From Obrimoposthia wandeli (lineage: Eukaryota), in assembly GCA_977020255.1 (NCBI GenBank), contig CDROCS010001117.1, positions 1 to 64,000 on the forward strand: a stretch of 64,000 bases of DNA, written 5' to 3'. A program made the translations under genes and the position numbers. Below, piece by piece: positions 44,876 to 56,759 of this stretch. How positions within the stretch are numbered: position 1 is the first letter of the stretch; every line of letters begins with the position of its first letter. The notes under the pieces were generated by a model. The model searched no databases, was not told the DNA's origin, and saw nothing but the letters and a program-made list of their open reading frames with translations.

Positions 44876-45676
44876 CTAGGTATTAGAAAAAGGCGCATTA
44901 GCTAAATTTTGCGTATATTTCGCTTCTTTTTCTAATGCTTCTAAATCTTTAACAATCAATTGATTACGTTTTTTATCAATGATGTCTGCTTTTTTCCAAT
45001 GTTGTAACTGTTTATTAATGACTTGCCTGACTGAGCCCGTCATTCGCGCCAATGTTTCATCATTTAAACCATTTACTAAATGGTGCTGATGTTCTTCTTC
45101 TTTGGATCCCGTATAAAACTTAATTTTATTAATATGCTCTAAAATAATGCGGCTTAAGCGAGTCGTAACATCGTGTAAAACTAAACTACTGGCCTGCTCT
45201 TCTTTTTCACGCATTTTTTTCGCTAAATAAGGCATAAATTGCTGATTAAATTCTGGATAGGTCCATAACCAATGTCGCATAGTTGACAGTTCAACTGATA
45301 ATAATTTTACAGTGGTTAAAGGTGAAATAATTACGTCGTGAGGTTGATCATCTAATAGAACCATTAAATCAAAACAATCACCAGCATAAAGCATATCTAA
45401 TGTGGCTTCTCTGCCTGTATCAGGATTACTTTGTTTGATTTCTAAACTCCCCTCAATCACCACAAAAAAGCGTTTAGTTAATATGTCACAATTAATGTAA
45501 TCGCCTTTATGCCACTCATTAAGCTGAAATTCTTGTTGAAAATCCTCAATTAATTTTTCTGGTAAATCTGCAAAAAGATTAGCTTGTTTCACTAACACAG
45601 GACTTAACACCGGACTTAACTCTGGACTTAACTCTTGAGTAGATTTTTGAGGTAAATCAGTCTTATTTTTATGCAT
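44876..45676 (-). CDS. Crp/Fnr-family regulator
   Basis: cNMP-binding domain (FFVVIEGSLEI, AGDCF) plus C-terminal HTH (ETLARMTGSVRQVINKQL). Confidence 0.9.
   Translation of the reverse strand: MHKNKTDLPQKSTQELSPELSPVLSPVLVKQANLFADLPEKLIEDFQQEFQLNEWHKGDYINCDILTKRFFVVIEGSLEIKQSNPDTGREATLDMLYAGDCFDLMVLLDDQPHDVIISPLTTVKLLSVELSTMRHWLWTYPEFNQQFMPYLAKKMREKEEQASSLVLHDVTTRLSRIILEHINKIKFYTGSKEEEHQHHLVNGLNDETLARMTGSVRQVINKQLQHWKKADIIDKKRNQLIVKDLEALEKEAKYTQNLANAPFSNT
45600..45635. repeat. In-frame 12-bp tandem repeat in the Crp/Fnr N-terminus
   Basis: GGACTTAACACC GGACTTAACTCT GGACTTAACTCT, encoding ELSP-ELSP-VLSP. Confidence 0.7.
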
Positions 45677-48874: not shown

Positions 48875-48900
48875 AAAACAGGCGAATAGCCTGTTTTTTT
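48875..48900 (+). terminator. Rho-independent terminator
   Basis: AAAACAGGC-GAATA-GCCTGTTTTTTT. Confidence 0.75.
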
Positions 48901-49152
48901 GGTTTCGGTACAGAAACTGTCATTAATCAGTAGCCCGGATGAAGACGGTAATGTCTTCAAATGAGGGGAATGAAGCTCTCAACGGGTAATTCAGTAATAT
49001 TTTTAATTAGTGTCCCTTTTTATCGGGCAAGATCAAAGAACCTATAGCGGTCGTTGAATAGTTCTCTAAACCTTTCTATCAAAAGATCACTTTGATTCTG
49101 ATACTGTTCATTATTGGTTGTCTATGGTGATTCGTTCCTATATGGAGGGATT

Positions 49153-49353
49153 ATGTTAAAAGGCATGACGTCACAACGCTTGATTGCTCTATCACTGACA
49201 GGCATAGCATTTCTGAACTTCCCACTTCTTGCGCTATGGGATAAGGATATACATGTACTAGGATGGCCACTCCTGCCATTTGGATTATTTCTGATTTGGG
49301 GAATATTAATTGCAGCCCTGGCCTGGGTGATGGAAAAACGGAAAACTACCTAA
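49153..49353 (+). CDS. Small 2-TM membrane protein coupled to the SLC5 kinase
   Basis: GGAGG RBS; two hydrophobic helices; stop overlaps the next start (TAATG). Confidence 0.8.
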   Translation: MLKGMTSQRLIALSLTGIAFLNFPLLALWDKDIHVLGWPLLPFGLFLIWGILIAALAWVMEKRKTT

Positions 49354-52094
49354 TGCTCTCCCCGCCTCTGGTCATAACCGTCTCTTTTAGCTATCTGTTT
49401 ATTCTGTTTGCTGTCGCCTATTTCGGTGACAAACGTGCAGAAACTGGGCAATCCATCATTGCCAGTCCGTGGGTATATGCCCTGTCCATGGCCGTGTATT
49501 GCACCGCATGGACCTACTTCGGTAGCGTGGGACTTGCCGCCAGCGCCGGAGTGTGGTTTCTGCCCATTTACCTCGGGCCAATGCTATCCATGATCTTGGC
49601 CTGGCTCGTTGTTCGAAAAATGATCCGCATTGCGAAAACCTACCGCATTACGTCTATCGCCGATTTCATTGCCAGTCGCTATGGCAAAAGTCCCTTGCTG
49701 GCTGGGCTGGTAACAATAATCACAGTAGTCGGCATCGTTCCTTATATCGCCTTGCAGCTAAAAGCCATTTCCAGCGGTTACGATGTAATGACCACCCCTC
49801 TGGGTGGCATTGCCATACCACCGTCCGATTGGTGGTTTGATGGAACACTTTATATGGCACTGATACTGGCGGGGTTCACCATCATATTCGGTACCAGGCA
49901 TCTGGACAGCAGTGAGCGACATGAAGGCCTAGTGGCAGCCATTGCCCTCGAATCAGTCGTCAAGCTGGTGGCTTTTCTGGCGGTAGGACTATTTGTAACT
50001 TATGGCATTTTTGACGGCATGTCAGACATATTTGCCCAGGCATCAGCAATAGCAGAAATCAAGGAGTTACTGACATTTGACCAAGGACGCTCGTTTGCCT
50101 ACACCCAATGGTTTGCTTTGACACTACTGGCCATGCTGTCGGTTATTTTTCTACCACGCCAATTTCAGATCATGGTTGTGGAAAATGTCGATGAGCAACA
50201 CTTGAAACGAGCAGTTTGGGTGTTTCCGCTTTATTTATTATTGATCAATATTTTTGTCTTACCCATAGCATTGGGGGGACTGCTTTATTTTGGTACTGCT
50301 CCCGTTAATGCTGAGACCTTTGTACTTTCGCTGCCACTGGCACATGGCCAAAATATGCTGGCCTTATTCGCTTTTGTTGGGGGTCTATCGGCTGTGACCG
50401 GTATGGTAATTGTCGAAGTCATCGCTATATCAACCATGGTGTGTAATGACCTGGTCATGCCGGTGTTATTGCGCACCACACGCTTTGGTGAACGCTCCGG
50501 CGGCGACCTGACCAAGTTACTACTTTTCATTCGCCGTATTGCCATCATCGGCATCCTGTTGTTGGGCTACCTGTATTTTCATTTAGCCGGGGAAGCCTAT
50601 GCCCTGGTTAGCATCGGCCTGATCAGCTTTGCCGCTGTCGCACAATTCGCACCCGCTATGTTGGGCGGAATGTACTGGAAAAACGGTACACGCAACGGTG
50701 CGCTTGCGGGACTTTTACTGGGGTTTTTGATGTGGTCTTACACTTTAATGTTACCTTCACTCGCCAAATCTGGATGGATATCTGTAGATTTCCTTAATCA
50801 GGGTCTATTTGGCATTGAATGGCTTAAACCAGAACAATTTTTGGGGTTGGCAGGCCTTGATAATCTGACCCATTCCTTGTTTTGGAGCCTTTTTATTAAT
50901 GTAGTGGCATACGTGGCGGTATCACTCTGGAAACGCCCAACAGCCCATGAAACCAGTCAGGCCTTATTGTTTGTCGATGTTTTTCAACGTACTCGCTTAT
51001 CCCATCCGGTATTCTGGCAGGGCCAGGCAAAAGTAAATGACCTGTTACACCTGACAGGACGTTTTATGGGTGAAACAAAGGCACAGCAATTGTTCACCGA
51101 CTATGCTCAGGAAGTGGGTGCCGATGATATCGGGAAAATCCCCGAAGACGCAACACTGGTACACTTTGTAGAAACCCATCTGACCGGAGCCATTGGCAGT
51201 GCCTCTGCGCGGATTATGGTGGCTTCAGTAGTGGAAGAAGAAGCTCTGGAACTGGATGACGTAATGCGCATCCTGGAAGAAGCCTCTCAGTTACGCGCCT
51301 ATTCGGAAGCACTGGAAGAAAAGTCGTGTTCGTTGGAACAGGCCACCAAGGAACTGCAAACGGCTAATGAACAGCTTAAAAGTCTGGATAGATTGAAAGA
51401 CAACTTTATGTCATCCGTGACCCATGAGTTACGTACTCCGCTGACCTCCATCCGCGCTATGACAGAGTTAATGCTGGATGACCCCAGCATGGAGGAGGAA
51501 CAGCGCCTTGAATTTCTCAGTATTGTGGTGTCAGAAGCAGAGCGTCTCAGCAGACTGGTAAACCAGGTACTGGATATGGCAAAGATAGAAGCAGGACATG
51601 CCGAGTGGCATAGCAGTGATGTGGACATACTGGAACTGGTAACGCAGTCAGTCAATTCCATCTCTGGCATCTATAAGGAACGTGGTGCTGTATTGGAAGT
51701 CCATGCCCAGAAACATGTGTCATTGATCCGCGCCGATGCTGATCGCTTGATACAGGTGCTGATAAACCTGCTATCAAACGCCGTAAAGTTTGTGCCCGAG
51801 GATAAAGGCAAGGTTGAAGTGCATATACGAGATGCAATGGAAGGCATCACGGTTGAAGTGATTGACAACGGGCCAGGTATCGCACCGGAAAAACAGAAGC
51901 TGGTGTTTGAAAAGTTCCGCCAGGTAGAAGGTGAAACAGATCGCCAGCTAGGTACTGGCCTTGGCTTGCCGATAAGCCGTCAAATTGTGGAGCATTTTGG
52001 AGGTCGCATGTGGTTACAGTCAAACATAGGCGAAGGCGCCTGCTTTGGCTTTTTCTTACCTAGGCAAAAGGACAGTCTGGCCGATACATCATAA
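49353..52094 (+). CDS. SLC5 (Na+/solute symporter)-STAC-histidine kinase, CrbS/CbrA superfamily
   Basis: SLC5 domain (YALSMAVYCTAWTYFGSVG, IADFIASRYGKS), STAC (GAIGSASARIMV), H-box THELRTPL, N-box NLLSNAVKF, DNGPGI and GTGLGL. No PAS or REC domain. Confidence 0.92.
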   Translation: MLSPPLVITVSFSYLFILFAVAYFGDKRAETGQSIIASPWVYALSMAVYCTAWTYFGSVGLAASAGVWFLPIYLGPMLSMILAWLVVRKMIRIAKTYRITSIADFIASRYGKSPLLAGLVTIITVVGIVPYIALQLKAISSGYDVMTTPLGGIAIPPSDWWFDGTLYMALILAGFTIIFGTRHLDSSERHEGLVAAIALESVVKLVAFLAVGLFVTYGIFDGMSDIFAQASAIAEIKELLTFDQGRSFAYTQWFALTLLAMLSVIFLPRQFQIMVVENVDEQHLKRAVWVFPLYLLLINIFVLPIALGGLLYFGTAPVNAETFVLSLPLAHGQNMLALFAFVGGLSAVTGMVIVEVIAISTMVCNDLVMPVLLRTTRFGERSGGDLTKLLLFIRRIAIIGILLLGYLYFHLAGEAYALVSIGLISFAAVAQFAPAMLGGMYWKNGTRNGALAGLLLGFLMWSYTLMLPSLAKSGWISVDFLNQGLFGIEWLKPEQFLGLAGLDNLTHSLFWSLFINVVAYVAVSLWKRPTAHETSQALLFVDVFQRTRLSHPVFWQGQAKVNDLLHLTGRFMGETKAQQLFTDYAQEVGADDIGKIPEDATLVHFVETHLTGAIGSASARIMVASVVEEEALELDDVMRILEEASQLRAYSEALEEKSCSLEQATKELQTANEQLKSLDRLKDNFMSSVTHELRTPLTSIRAMTELMLDDPSMEEEQRLEFLSIVVSEAERLSRLVNQVLDMAKIEAGHAEWHSSDVDILELVTQSVNSISGIYKERGAVLEVHAQKHVSLIRADADRLIQVLINLLSNAVKFVPEDKGKVEVHIRDAMEGITVEVIDNGPGIAPEKQKLVFEKFRQVEGETDRQLGTGLGLPISRQIVEHFGGRMWLQSNIGEGACFGFFLPRQKDSLADTS

Positions 52095-52112
52095 TGATAG
52101 GAGTTCCAAAAA

Positions 52113-52484
52113 ATGAGTAAAACTATCCTGATTGCGGACGATGAGAAGAATATCCTGATTTCTCTGGAGTTCCTGATGAAAAGGGAAGGCTACCTTGTGG
52201 TGACAGCACATGACGGCCAGGAAGCGATTGATGCCATATCCAGGGAGCATCCCGACCTGGTGTTACTGGATGTCATGATGCCCAAAAAGACTGGCTTTGA
52301 TGTTTGCCAAGAAGTACGCGCAAACCCCGTTATGAAAGATATCCTTATTCTGATGTTGACGGCTAAAGGGCGTGATACGGATATCGCCAAGGGACTGGCA
52401 ATGGGTGCTAATGGTTACGTCATCAAGCCATTTTCCACTAGGGAACTGGCACAAAAAGTGCGCGACATGCTGGATCAGGCATGA
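52113..52484 (+). CDS. Single-domain response regulator (REC only)
   Basis: IADDE, LLDVMMP, LTA and KPF catalytic set intact; 123 aa. Confidence 0.94.
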   Translation: MSKTILIADDEKNILISLEFLMKREGYLVVTAHDGQEAIDAISREHPDLVLLDVMMPKKTGFDVCQEVRANPVMKDILILMLTAKGRDTDIAKGLAMGANGYVIKPFSTRELAQKVRDMLDQA

Positions 52485-54652
52485 GACGCTTTGACTGGAG
52501 GGTAGCTATTGGTGTGGCCATCATTGGCATTATCTGCCTGTTATGGCTGCTGGCAACAGGCATATTAATCTGGTCTACCCTTGACGAAACAGGTCGTGAT
52601 GCAGTTGCAGCCACACTGAGGCCAAGCCTTGAATTGTTGATTTTAATGTGGGCAATATCTCTGGGTGCGGTTGGTATCGCACTGCGTTGGCTAGTGGCCT
52701 ACTTCATGACCGCCCCTGCCCGTCTCGCAGAAGATGCCCAAGTTTTGCTTGGCACCGATGTAAAACGCCAACTTAAACCAAGTGGTAGTATTGAAAACCG
52801 TAGCTTGACCGATCTGTTCAATCAGTTAGTGCAGCAGCGAGAAACATTACGTGAGGAAATGGGTGCACTTGTGCAGGAAGCAGCCCACAACACAGAACTG
52901 GAAAAAAATCGCCTGGCCGCACTGATGTCCGAACTCAGTAAAAGTGTCGTGGTTTGCAATCTGGATGGACGTATCCTGCTATACAACAACCGAGCCCGAA
53001 GACAGTTCCAACGATTATCACAAGCCACCAAGGTTGCGGCTGGGGTTGAATTGATCGGTCTTGGCCGTTCAATCTATGGTCTGTTCGATCGCAAATTACT
53101 CACGCATGCACTGGAAAATATTCAACACCGTTTACAACATAACGTAGCATCCCCATCAGCACAGTTTGTAACCACCACACAGTCCGGGCAATTGCTACGA
53201 GTACAAATGGCACCGGTACGCGCTGTCCAACTTGAAAACAGGGAATCCGCTCAGATGACGGGATTTGTACTCTTAACCGAAAACATCACCCATGAATTTG
53301 AAGCACTATCACAACAGGATCACGTTCTAAATACGCTTACCGAACGCAGTCGTGCTGCAATAGCAAACATGCAGGCAGCTCTTGATGTACTGGAATACCC
53401 CGATCTTGAACCAGGCATGCAAGAAAGTCTGCTGGGTGTTTTGCGTGAAGAGACGCAGGGATTGGGGGAACGTATCCATGAACTCAAATCAACCACCGTA
53501 AATGGCTTCATGTCACACTGGTCCCTCGAAGATATGCTGGGAGCTGACTTGGTTGAGGCCGCCATAAACCGTATTAATGCACTGGAGGGACTTACCGCTA
53601 CCGAATTCAGTGTCGATACTTCCGTTTGGCTGAAAGTGGAAAGCTTTACATTACTAGAAGCAATCACCTATCTGACCGAACATGTACACCTGGAATGTGG
53701 CGTGGACACGGTGCAATTTCGTCTTAGCATGACCGAAACTCATGGTCAGCTTGATCTTTGCTGGACTCCACTAAACAATAAAAAGGACACTAGGTTAAAT
53801 TGCGAAAAAGATTTCATTCGGCTAGGCGGTGAAAAAAGCTCATTGACAATCCAGGATGTCGTTGAACGCCATGATGGTGCGTTCTGGTATGAACACGAAA
53901 CAGAGGGTAATCAGGCATTCTTTCGTTTCCTTGTACCACTGGCTAAACCACAAGAGCAGCTGGATACATCGGCTTTGATGCGCAAAGGTAGCCGCCCGGA
54001 ATTTTACGACTTTGACCTGTTTCAAGCCTCGGAACAAACGCGTTCACTGGAAGATTGCAAGCTTACCGAACTCTCCTACACCGTCTTTGATACAGAAACG
54101 ACCGGGCTAGATCCATCTGGCGGTGATGAAATTATCCAGATCGGAGCCATACGCATAGTCAACGGTAAGCTGTTGCATCAGGAAACCTTTGATCAACTGG
54201 TAGATCCCAGGCGCTCTATACCGACAATAACTATACCGATTCACGGCATCCAGCCCGATATGGTGAAAGGACAGCCAGTCATTGAAGAAGTATTACCAGC
54301 CTTTCATGCGTTTGTGGGTGATACCGTGTTGGTAGCACACAATGCCGCATTTGACATGCGCTGCCTGCAAGTGAAGGAAACGGCTACCGGGGTGGTGTTC
54401 GATCAGCCCGTACTAGATACCTTACTACTGTCTGCTGTCGTCCATCCCAATCAGGAATCGCACGGGCTGGAAGAAATTGCCGAACGCTTTAACATTAATA
54501 TTCATGGGCGCCACACGGCCTTGGGTGACGCCATGGCAACAGCGGAAGTATTCCTGCAACTGATTCACCTTTTGGCAGAGCAAGGCATCTATACCATGGG
54601 ACAGGCACGTGTCGCCGCGCAAAAGACCTACTATGCTCGTCTCAAATACTAA
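52481..54652 (+). CDS. Membrane-anchored HAMP-PAS-degenerate kinase-DEDDh 3'-5' exonuclease fusion
   Basis: 2 TM helices, HAMP-like segment, PAS (VVVCNLDGRILLYN); Exo I VFDTETTG, Exo II AHNAAFD and Exo III HTALGDA. ATGA overlap with the REC gene. Confidence 0.88.
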   Translation: MRRFDWRVAIGVAIIGIICLLWLLATGILIWSTLDETGRDAVAATLRPSLELLILMWAISLGAVGIALRWLVAYFMTAPARLAEDAQVLLGTDVKRQLKPSGSIENRSLTDLFNQLVQQRETLREEMGALVQEAAHNTELEKNRLAALMSELSKSVVVCNLDGRILLYNNRARRQFQRLSQATKVAAGVELIGLGRSIYGLFDRKLLTHALENIQHRLQHNVASPSAQFVTTTQSGQLLRVQMAPVRAVQLENRESAQMTGFVLLTENITHEFEALSQQDHVLNTLTERSRAAIANMQAALDVLEYPDLEPGMQESLLGVLREETQGLGERIHELKSTTVNGFMSHWSLEDMLGADLVEAAINRINALEGLTATEFSVDTSVWLKVESFTLLEAITYLTEHVHLECGVDTVQFRLSMTETHGQLDLCWTPLNNKKDTRLNCEKDFIRLGGEKSSLTIQDVVERHDGAFWYEHETEGNQAFFRFLVPLAKPQEQLDTSALMRKGSRPEFYDFDLFQASEQTRSLEDCKLTELSYTVFDTETTGLDPSGGDEIIQIGAIRIVNGKLLHQETFDQLVDPRRSIPTITIPIHGIQPDMVKGQPVIEEVLPAFHAFVGDTVLVAHNAAFDMRCLQVKETATGVVFDQPVLDTLLLSAVVHPNQESHGLEEIAERFNINIHGRHTALGDAMATAEVFLQLIHLLAEQGIYTMGQARVAAQKTYYARLKY

Positions 54653-54685
54653 AAACCTATCGGAGTTAAAAGTATCGCTGCCGAC

Positions 54686-54720
54686 TGACCTAATGACCTA
54701 ATAACCTAATGACCTAATGA
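54686..54720. repeat. 8-bp tandem repeat at the right edge of the GC-rich block
   Basis: TGACCTAA TGACCTAA TAACCTAA TGACCTAA TGA. Confidence 0.75.
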
Positions 54721-55016
54721 CGCCAATCATCCATCGTTCACGCTTACCTTAAAGGCACTTGTTCAAAATTAAATCCCTCCTGCCCGTCAATTATTCCCTT
54801 TAATTGCTCAGTCGTTCCCAAAGGACTAGTTTAGAAACGTTTGATGCTGCGTTATTTATTTTGATAGTGGCGCAACACGGATAGTAGCTTATTAGAGAAT
54901 GCAGTCGGTAAAGGAAGTACCTTATTAGATAATGCAGGAGCTATTATCCTAAGCATATTCTACTGAGTAAGCATTATTTTCAATAAAGGCCTTGCTTAAA
55001 GACGTCTCTAATTGCA

Positions 55017-55487: not shown

Positions 55488-56759
55488 ATGCCTGTTAATT
55501 TACCTGAAATAATTCCTGCTTCACTTACGCCAATTCAAGGCATTCGCCTAGGTTGGGCCGAGTCAAATATTAAAAAACCAAACCGTAAAGATTTACTCGT
55601 TATTGAAATCTGTGATGGTAGTGCAGTATTCTGCTTTTTACTCAAAATCGATTTTGTGCTGCACCGGTTACCTTATGTAAAAAACATTTAGACGCAGTAA
55701 AAAAGATTGATATTACGGGCACTAATGTTTCAGGTATAAAAGCATTAGTAATCAATACAGGTAATGCCAACGCAGGAACAGGCGAGCAAGGCATGTTAGA
55801 TGCACTCACGACCTGTCAAAATTTAGCTGAAATTATGTCAATTCCAGTCGAGTCGATATTACCTTTTTCAACAGGCGTAATTTTAGAACATTTACCTATG
55901 GATAAGCTCTTAACAGGTTTACCACTGGCCGTTGCTAATTTGACCACCGATAATTGGGCTGATGCGGCTTCAGCAATTATGACCACAGACATTGCGCCTA
56001 AAGCTTATGCTACTAATGTAAAAATTGGCGATCATCGCGTAAATATTACCGGTATATCGAAAGGTGCCGGTATGATCCATCCTAATATGGCCACCATGTT
56101 AGGTTATGTGGCAACCGATGCGAATATAACGCAATCGTTGTTAGATAGTATGACCAAAAAAATTGCAGATTTATCATTTAACTGTATTTCTGTTGACGGC
56201 GATACCTCAACCAATGATTCCTTTATTGTTATCGCCACCGGAAAAAGTGACGCTACCGCTATCACAACCCCTAACGATGAAGGTTATCAGGAAGTGTTTA
56301 ATGCCTTGCTTGAAACCTCTCAGTATTTGGCCAGTTTATTGTTCGTGATGGCGAAGGCGCAAACTGCTTATAACAGTAACGGTTAAAGGTGCACAAACAC
56401 TTGATGAAGCAAAAACTATCGGTTTTTCTATCGGTAAAAGTCCATTAGTTAAAACGGCAATGTTTGCTTCTGATCCTAATTTAGGCCGTGTACTTGCTGC
56501 TATTGGTTACGCTTCAAGAGAGTGTGAGTCATTAGCTGATTTAGATACTAACCAATTAGAGCTCTATTTTGGTGGTTTATTAGTGGCTGAAAAAGGCGGC
56601 CGTGCTGCCAGTTATAAGGAAGATGAGGGGCAAGCGATAATGAACGAAGCAGAAATTGATATTACCGTGCAACTTCATCGAGGCAATGAAGAGTCAACTA
56701 TTTGGACCTGTGATTTTAGCTATGATTACGTAAAAATTAATGCAGAATACAGAACCTAA
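55488..56759 (+). pseudogene. argJ: Bifunctional ornithine acetyltransferase ArgJ, frameshifted (possibly assembly error)
   Basis: KDLLVI, NTGNANAGTG, KGAGMIHPNMATMLG, VDGDTSTND, IVRDGEGA (shifted frame) and DFSYDYVKINAEYRT motifs. Single-base losses near 55630, 56335 and 56365. Confidence 0.88.

Follow-up and report, generated by a model that had tools for sequence, protein, structure and literature searches.

Two-component systems overwhelmingly act through transcription factors, cyclic-nucleotide enzymes or chemotaxis proteins. What can such a system control when its regulator is a bare receiver and its operon closes with a nuclease? This question is raised by four same-strand genes at positions 49153-54652 of a 64,000-nucleotide (nt) stretch of DNA filed under Obrimoposthia wandeli (assembly GCA_977020255.1, contig CDROCS010001117.1, positions 1-64,000, forward strand; hereafter the window). 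We propose, at about even chances, that these genes make up a self-contained two-component pathway whose output is other than transcription: the phosphorylated receiver would dock on a dead kinase and thereby switch an exonuclease. To our knowledge, and in the literature searched, no nuclease output read through a pseudo-kinase has been described, and literature searches on STAC, CrbS, DUF294, DEDDh and PAS together with exonuclease brought up no account of the fusion protein encoded by the last gene. The genes are as follows (ORF, open reading frame; TM, transmembrane; aa, amino acids; REC, receiver):

49153-49353, + strand: small ORF, 66 aa, two TM helices, possibly a CbrX-like hairpin peptide
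49353-52094, + strand: SLC5-STAC histidine kinase, 913 aa, not a hybrid kinase and without a PAS domain
52113-52484, + strand: REC-only response regulator, 123 aa, a WalR/PhoP-type receiver without a DNA-binding domain
52481-54652, + strand: fusion protein, 723 aa, comprising TM hairpin, signalling helix, PAS, pseudo-DHp, pseudo-CA, linker and DEDDh exonuclease

Organization of the operon and its signalling proteins

An earlier, sequence-only reading of this DNA had noted tight packing, with overlaps at two of the three junctions. This was borne out when ORFs and junctions were read directly: the TAA of the small ORF overlapped the kinase ATG at 49353 (TAATG), the REC stop overlapped the fusion start at 52481-52484 (ATGA), and the kinase and REC genes were separated by an 18-nt spacer carrying GGAG, 7 nt upstream of the REC ATG (52113). 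By these junctions the genes of the operon are translationally coupled. The small ORF most plausibly starts at the ATG at 49153, which has a GGAGG upstream of it. Moreover, contigs from the RNA libraries of two marine metatranscriptome studies bridged all three gene junctions, one covering 51747-53530 and another starting upstream of the small ORF, crossing it and reaching the kinase gene, which fits a polycistronic transcript without proving one.

Neighbourhoods were counted in the best 80 of at least 576 loci, taken from named genomes and representing the closest relatives; denominators below 80 are the testable loci. The cassette was collinear in essentially all related loci and is therefore not a chance arrangement.

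The regulator had been described as REC-only with all of its phosphorylation residues, and both points held: it is a lone Response_reg domain (98 bits, Pfam) whose translation shows D9, D10, D53 (52269-52271), T83 and K105. The solved chains nearest to it were the receiver domains of YycF and PhoP.

The kinase had been assigned to the SLC5-STAC class, and searches against solved structures confirmed the assignment. Its parts are:

49365-50837, + strand: SLC5 (sodium:solute symporter-like) transporter domain, ~aa 5-495, by match to 10ed_A
50910-51227, + strand: linker and STAC-like region, ~aa 520-625 with approximate boundaries, by profile alignment to 10ed_A residues 490-589
51396-52067, + strand: kinase core, DHp and CA ATPase domain, with the phospho-His H691 at 51423-51425

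As a single sequence the kinase matched 10ed_A, a solved 606-residue chain named "histidine kinase", at 1.5e-73 over aa 7-474 (phmmer), and a 17-member profile of the kinase family matched the same chain at E=5.6e-100 (profile positions 5-624, chain residues 8-589). Since the profile match extends through the linker and the STAC region, the kinase has the architecture SLC5-STAC-DHp-CA. Pfam SSF taken alone was sub-threshold (16 bits), and a single-sequence PDB search for STAC with aa 481-680 returned nothing, the STAC region being reached by the family profile only. The position of the STAC four-helix bundle was taken from the SLC5-STAC cryo-electron microscopy construct of CbrA (PMC13022988), which we infer from chain length and name to be 10ed_A. 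The core matched HisKA (67 bits, aa 682-748) and HATPase_c (101 bits, aa 795-905) in Pfam, and H691 was invariant in 75 of 75 operons. Unlike CrbS and CbrA, this kinase has neither a PAS domain nor a C-terminal receiver.

The small ORF had no match in Pfam or NCBIfam and was found by tblastn upstream of the kinase in 59 of the 67 testable related loci. It resembles CbrX, a 58-aa helical hairpin that is translationally coupled to CbrA and binds the SLC5 domain of CbrA in a stable complex (PMC8871633, PMC13022988), in position, size, two hydrophobic helices and coupling to the kinase (TAATG); the likeness lies in these features, not in sequence homology.

A predicted dead kinase core within the fusion protein

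The fourth gene product had been called a membrane protein ending in an intact DEDDh exonuclease. This was correct but incomplete: aa 100-490 constitute a PAS and pseudo-histidine-kinase module, and the protein divides as follows:

52481-52753, + strand: N-terminal TM hairpin (aa 1-91), model helices at aa 2-33 and 36-91, hydrophobic stretches in the translation
52943-53284, + strand: cytoplasmic PAS domain (aa 155-268), by match to the WalK/VicK PAS domain and by the AlphaFold2 model
53288-53497, + strand: pseudo-DHp two-helix hairpin (aa 270-339), Glu288 (53342-53344) at the phospho-His position, R291 kept
53528-53941, + strand: pseudo-CA domain (aa 350-487), HATPase fold kept, with degenerate N, G1 and G2 ATP-binding boxes
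53993-54022, + strand: linker motif R-P-E-F-Y-D-F-D-L-F (aa 505-514), near-invariant, in a segment predicted to be disordered
54074-54640, + strand: DEDDh 3'-5' exonuclease domain (aa 532-720), PolC/epsilon type, catalytic residues intact

Fusion aa 1-520 gave no Pfam match. An alignment of 60 full-length relatives at 33-60% identity was built, and aa 85-520 were cut out of it as a sub-alignment. AlphaFold2 run on this sub-alignment predicted a long helix, a PAS domain, a two-helix DHp hairpin and a CA-like alpha/beta domain at a pLDDT (predicted local distance difference test) of 85.9, and the full-length model reached 83.9. The profile of the same segment matched VicK (4i5s, 1.4e-19), ThkA (3a0r, 1.1e-12), WalK and the pseudokinase DivL (4q20, 6.6e-7) in the PDB, and Foldseek on the middle part of the fusion returned WalK, VicK, YF1, ThkA, NifL and DivL. 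By profile and by predicted structure alike, the middle of the fusion is a genuine PAS-DHp-CA fold. The TM hairpin has only a short (~18 aa) hydrophilic loop and the fusion thus lacks a periplasmic sensor domain, its best-conserved sensor part being the PAS domain, in which E141, N169 and G193 were invariant and C159, Y168, R196, S197 and H209 were conserved in at least 90%.

The profile comparison aligned the T-E-x-x-R of the fusion family with the S-H-E-L-R of VicK. At the acceptor column the 60 relatives carried, among other residues, Glu (29), Asp (6), Gln (5), Lys (4), Val (3) and Thr (3), so that Glu or Asp occupied 35 of the 60 positions and His none; in the close operons the residue was Glu in 75 of 75. 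Arg291 was kept in 54 of the 60 relatives. In the pseudo-CA domain the G1 box (DxGxG) was replaced by D425-L-x-W428-x-G430, and the G2 box was lost. Therefore, on the column counts, with the acceptor His replaced and the ATP-binding boxes degenerate, the kinase core of the fusion is dead. Compared directly, the pseudo-DHp and the kinase core of the same operon matched at an hhalign probability of 97.6%.

An intact PolC-type exonuclease behind a conserved linker

RNase_T matched fusion aa 535-691 at 126 bits (Pfam), and the DEDDh residues D537 and E539 (Exo I D-x-E), D625 (Exo II) and H678 and D683 (Exo III H-x4-D) were invariant in 60 of 60 relatives, which argues that the nuclease chemistry is under selection. 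The nearest solved chain was the PolC exonuclease 2p1j (3.6e-31), followed by DinG-exo and epsilon. This likeness to PolC-type domains favours DNA 3' ends as the probable substrate, with RNA or small nucleotides also compatible.

The domain shares the DEDDh fold and all catalytic residues with DNA polymerase III epsilon and PolC. The whole protein differs from epsilon (~240 aa with an alpha-binding tail) in being membrane-anchored with ~520 extra N-terminal residues, and is not a replisome subunit. The epsilon equivalog models failed (TIGR01406, dnaQ_proteo, 108 against a cut-off of 223; NF004316, 99.5 against 196), and the database name "DNA polymerase III subunit epsilon" is therefore a domain-level mis-annotation. 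In the Atlas, many fusion clusters stand under automatic names such as "PAS fold/Exonuclease domain-containing protein".

Between the dead kinase core and the exonuclease, R505, P506, D510, F511, L513 and F514 of the linker were conserved in at least 90% of the 60 relatives, and pLDDT fell below 50 over aa 492-520. The linker end D-F-D-L-F resembles the beta-sliding-clamp-binding consensus, Q-L-[SD]-L-F, and may bind the clamp; the motif could equally be a docking or an autoinhibitory peptide.

Conservation of the cassette and its metabolic neighbourhood

A word-index search returned more than 5,000 relatives of the fusion, and more than 150 full-length clusters at the 50% level came out of an exhaustive one, with the architecture kept down to ~35% identity. 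At least 576 species genomes, hundreds of them proteobacterial, carried the fusion in a genome scan that used its non-exonuclease part, among them members of Colwellia, Thiothrix/Thiolinea, Wenzhouxiangella, Thioalkalivibrio, Hydrogenophaga, Rubrivivax, Rhodoferax, Polaromonas and Zoogloea. Around the fusion we counted:

REC directly upstream of the fusion: 78 of 78 testable loci
SLC5-kinase upstream of REC: 67 of 68 testable loci
DUF294 within 10 kb of the cassette: 53 of 80 loci
DUF294 immediately downstream of the fusion: 34 of 68 testable loci
SSS permease near the cassette: 44 of 80 loci
DUF4212 near the cassette: 27 of 80 loci
acs near the cassette: 5 of 80 loci

Thus the exonuclease gene is conserved beside the kinase; the sequence-only reading had named a lack of such conservation as a refutation of its proposal, and the proposal passed. 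The single locus without an adjacent kinase was from Thioalkalivibrio (our locus L061), and an SLC5-type kinase was encoded elsewhere in the same genome. That reading had also named acs and DUF294 as partners to look for; DUF294, DUF4212-SSS and acs were indeed found in relatives, but none of these partners in the window itself. DUF294 proteins comprise cyclic-nucleotide (cNMP)-binding, CBS, nucleotidyltransferase and substrate-binding domains. In Hydrogenophaga-type loci (L023:2712-6187, L025), genes for phosphoenolpyruvate (PEP) synthase and its regulatory kinase/pyrophosphorylase (PSRP) lay directly upstream of the cassette, between it and the DUF4212-SSS permease pair. The neighbours of the cassette in relatives are therefore monocarboxylate-assimilation genes: DUF4212-SSS, acs, PEP synthase with PSRP, and DUF294.

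Because the 80 loci are the closest relatives, four further lineages at ~35% identity were sampled. The ATGA overlap of REC and fusion was kept at this distance (L091, L094, L095), even beside a plain SSS permease that replaced the kinase: L091 and L095 retained the overlapping REC-fusion pair, and L094 retained the whole cassette, adjoining two acs genes and DUF4212-SSS. At L092:535-6627 a deep-branching fusion followed a short (496-aa) DUF294 and was itself followed by a hemerythrin gene and two cNMP-binding/Crp-like genes; its DHp helix-1 region was poorly alignable to that of the window's fusion.

The operon encodes no DNA-binding output, as claimed from the outset: the regulator is REC-only, and no DNA-binding regulator recurred in the neighbourhoods of the 80 loci, though a distal one may exist. 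Just upstream of the full cassette in L094 (L094:2139-3182) lies a sigma54 activator without a receiver (347 aa, AAA+ and helix-turn-helix only). A bare REC beside a REC-less activator is suggestive, but as a hidden DNA-binding output the activator was rejected, being present in 0 of 80 loci.

A candidate route from receiver to nuclease

In the mechanism that we favour, the SLC5-STAC kinase, held stable in the membrane by the CbrX-like hairpin peptide, would respond to a small solute as it is transported or bound; acetate, pyruvate or a related monocarboxylate is the likeliest candidate. Once autophosphorylated at H691, the kinase would phosphorylate the stand-alone REC at D53. Phospho-REC would then dock on the dead DHp-CA of the fusion, a repurposed reader of REC phosphorylation, as DivL is for DivK, and docking would switch the activity or the accessibility of the C-terminal PolC-type DEDDh exonuclease, with the fusion's own cytoplasmic PAS domain as a possible second input.

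Several lines of evidence supported this mechanism: i) the linkage of REC and fusion is extremely tight; ii) the pseudo-DHp is HisKA-like; iii) the specificity positions are frozen; iv) REC is of the WalR/PhoP type; v) the pseudo-kinase is WalK/VicK-like. For the third, the canonical specificity positions of histidine kinases (HK) and response regulators (RR) were taken from the HK853/RR468 rewiring structures. Across the 75 operons they were frozen on all three partners: N-I-S-L in REC (alpha1 residues N13, I14, S17 and L21, invariant in 75 of 75), T-S-A-[LFMV]-[LMI] in the true DHp and [AG][NS][AV]A[MVLI] in the pseudo-DHp.

A complex of the DHp-CA dimer with REC was also predicted. It scored 0.38, against 0.02 for the best control, and was graded as weak support: among solved complexes the pass mark was attained by 51 of 78, among mismatched pairs by 2 of 108, and scores of 0.60 or below among the passes came from only 5 of the 78 solved complexes and from all 4 passing mismatches (of 180). 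The runs agreed in at least 94% of contacts, with a partner pLDDT of at least 83. HK-RR complexes being well represented among solved structures, the prediction adds little.

DivL of Caulobacter provides the closest precedent. There a kinase core has been repurposed to sense the phosphorylation state of the single-domain regulator DivK and modulates the kinase CckA (PMC4211667). DivL-DivK and the present pair have in common the PAS-DHp-CA fold, the loss of the acceptor His and the pairing with a stand-alone receiver, and the flow that we propose, from phosphorylated REC to a kinase-like domain, is reversed in the same way. They differ in that DivL carries Tyr at the His position and signals to CckA, whereas the fusion mostly carries Glu or Asp and is covalently joined to an enzyme. 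By this analogy the dead DHp-CA module is a plausible docking platform for phospho-REC.

Several points weigh against this mechanism: i) phosphotransfer and everything after it, REC-fusion binding and nuclease regulation by REC included, are inferred; ii) the solute was deduced from genes that flank the cassette in other genomes but are missing from this window; iii) no covariation between REC alpha1 and the pseudo-DHp or the true DHp was obtainable in the 75 operons, where these positions are invariant, and in the three deeper operons where they vary (L091, L094, L095) the sequences are too few for statistics; iv) the weak complex score may stem from solved HK-RR structures already known to the model, and its controls were unrelated proteins, not receivers; v) at deeper divergence the pseudo-DHp is moderately conserved, R291 being the only position at 90% or above; vi) in the divergent loci L092 and L093 the fusion follows DUF294 directly, with no REC between; and vii) four paralogous small-ORF/SLC5-kinase/REC modules (~40% identity) elsewhere in the assembly (L001, L002, L003, L008) have no fusion, and such a REC can thus have other targets.

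The known SLC5/STAC systems place the cassette among its relatives. In the literature searched, only three characterised ones were found, all with DNA-binding regulators (PMC9100948). CrbS/CrbR (MxtR/ErdR), CbrA/CbrB with CbrX, and RpuS/RpuR share with the kinase here the SLC5 domain, the STAC region and the HisKA/HATPase core, and share with the relatives' cassettes an acetate/pyruvate gene context. CrbR, CbrB and RpuR are LuxR-type, NtrC-type or other DNA-binding partners, whereas the partner in the cassette is REC-only. In Pseudomonas, a stand-alone DEDDh exonuclease and DUF294 (PP_0353/PP_0354) are MxtR/ErdR targets and affect pyruvate use (PMC9927547; bioRxiv 10.64898/2026.09.07.749794). 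The paralogous modules and these Pseudomonas targets both show a link of SLC5-kinase and DEDDh exonuclease, which is therefore general. The MxtR/ErdR exonuclease is a transcriptional target, whereas here the nuclease, joined to a dead kinase, is encoded by the signalling operon itself.

A wider picture is possible though doubtful: solute flux, signalled through the bare receiver, would let the dead kinase gate a membrane-tethered PolC-type exonuclease, which, often together with a DUF294 nucleotidyltransferase regulated through cNMP and CBS domains, would form a cycle of nucleotide addition and removal controlling acetate/pyruvate assimilation post-transcriptionally.

The fusion family is large, tightly conserved and mis-annotated, and it occurs in the environmentally important Burkholderiales and Thiotrichales and in marine Colwellia. 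Being widespread and experimentally approachable, it offers a handle on what SLC5-STAC "transceptors" signal beyond transcription, and on the role of the DUF294/exonuclease pair of the acetate (CrbS/R, MxtR/ErdR) regulon. If the proposed mechanism is true, the DivL principle, by which a kinase core works in reverse to sense receiver state, would gain a second and independent example, this one wired to an enzyme.

Alternative explanations of the conserved linkage

REC may have another or an additional target, such as DUF294, Acs or the SSS permease, or it may act by phosphorelay on a distal DNA-binding regulator. The fusion would then be governed mainly by the ligand of its own PAS domain, and the genes would belong together through a shared monocarboxylate regulon. 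The paralogous modules speak for this account, since without a fusion they adjoin acs, DUF4212-SSS, and DUF294 with short-exonuclease pairs, as do the L092/L093 arrangement, the standing of PAS as the most conserved sensor part of the fusion, and the REC-less sigma54 activator beside the L094 cassette. That activator, however, is in none of the 80 loci, and the adjacency of REC and fusion (78 of 78, with the overlap kept to 35% identity) is much tighter than that of DUF294 (53 of 80) or acs (5 of 80) to the cassette. Moreover, unless there is a receiver partner, one would hardly expect a DHp-like hairpin that lacks the His to keep its HisKA-like helix-1 features. We consider this account unlikely, with some chance of being right.

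The second explanation keeps the signalling logic and changes the substrate: the DEDDh domain would hydrolyse the product of DUF294, either an oligonucleotide signal, short or cyclic, or a nucleotidyl group attached to a macromolecule, in a write/erase cycle tuned by solute sensing. The frequency of DUF294 near the cassette, and immediately behind the fusion in half of the testable loci, agrees with it, as do the canonical pairs of DUF294 and short exonuclease with overlapping genes and the finding that both genes are MxtR/ErdR targets (PMC9927547; bioRxiv 10.64898/2026.09.07.749794). The short DUF294-associated exonucleases (PP_0354/PP_0353 type) share the exonuclease superfamily and the metabolic neighbourhood of the fusion, which often adjoins DUF294 exactly where the short exonuclease would be. 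They are, however, 220-240 aa long, only 25-29% identical to the fusion and devoid of the TM-PAS-pseudokinase module and the RPEFYDFDLF linker. Furthermore, the domain is most closely related to the DNA proofreading exonucleases PolC, DinG-exo and epsilon rather than to Orn or RNase T, and there is no DUF294 within the 64 kb of the window. Such a substrate therefore appears improbable.

The fusion might instead be a feedback regulator of the kinase, its dead DHp-CA sequestering REC, or heterodimerising with or docking onto the true kinase, and its exonuclease being constitutive or an unrelated housekeeping activity; its TM hairpin might lie against the SLC5 domain in the manner of CbrX. The two DHp hairpins, pseudo and true, are alike, the kinase and the fusion are both membrane-anchored, and modulation of another kinase, CckA, is also how DivL acts (PMC4211667). 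The paralogous modules add a further point in favour: after REC and before acs they carry a 71-72-aa two-TM hairpin ORF (L001:7183-7398, L002:5754-5966; 51% identical), which occupies the same position as the N-terminal TM hairpin of the fusion. Feedback would, however, leave unexplained why more than 150 clusters at the 50% level all have an intact exonuclease, with invariant catalytic residues, fused to the module. The disordered linker motif and the exonuclease domain also belong to the best-conserved parts of the protein. The probability of feedback is low.

An anti-phage defence island with a nuclease effector released by the signalling module is highly improbable: the GC-anomalous island is patchily distributed in Colwellia, PADLOC gave domain-level matches to a Cas-associated DEDDh domain and to candidate PDC-S48, and one Thiothrix locus has an adjoining TIR-STAND gene, but the PADLOC matches were limited to generic REC and DEDDh domains, on which ground a defence-system identity was rejected, the sensor is a solute-transporter homologue, and the Burkholderiales/Thiotrichales cassettes sit among acs, SSS, PEP synthase and DUF294, not among defence genes. 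The TIR-STAND NTPase gene, of defence-type architecture, adjoins the cassette in one Thiothrix metagenome-assembled genome (L015:114-1808) and is probably a coincidental neighbour.

Source and surroundings of the cassette

The assembly that holds the window comprises 1.35 Gb in 6,912 contigs and contains many different bacterial paralogues, i.e., it is mixed or metagenome-like. The contig is Colwellia-like, and the fusion was 99% identical to a protein of Colwellia demingiae, whose near-identical genome served as a stand-in for the window's genome. Besides the cassette, C. demingiae has a canonical DUF4212-SSS / DUF294 / short-exonuclease locus elsewhere.

Over exactly the four genes (49100-54700) the GC content was ~0.48 (0.46-0.49), against ~0.36 (0.33-0.41) in either flank. 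The upstream unit closes with:

48875-48897, + strand: terminator-like hairpin

after which come the rise in GC from ~0.36 to 0.48, at about 49100, and the 5' boundary of the operon. No acs, SSS permease or DUF294 was found anywhere in the 64-kb window, and an upstream 641-aa ORF considered as acs was rejected, being dnaK. Of 81 genomes sampled from the family, the fusion turned up in one, that of C. demingiae itself, and the nearest fusions after Colwellia were from Thiothrix, at 73% identity. The GC-rich block, the missing partners, the patchy occurrence and the place of Thiothrix as next closest thus indicate that the cassette was acquired horizontally by a small Colwellia clade. At the borders of the island, no insertion scars, flanking direct repeats, integrase, transposase, tRNA or mobile-element genes were found.

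Three further features of the surroundings were recorded. Upstream of dnaK, a gene on the minus strand (44876-45676) encodes a Crp/Fnr-type regulator (cNMP-binding and HTH_Crp_2 domains) with no evident link to the cassette. Downstream of the cassette, argJ is broken (55488-56759) and probably a pseudogene, its ORFs matching positions 75-245 (55793-56386) and 286-377 (56460-56759) of the ArgJ profile. At the 3' edge of the island, beginning 29 nt past the fusion stop, an 8-nt CCTAATGA-like unit is repeated in about five tandem copies (54681-54721).

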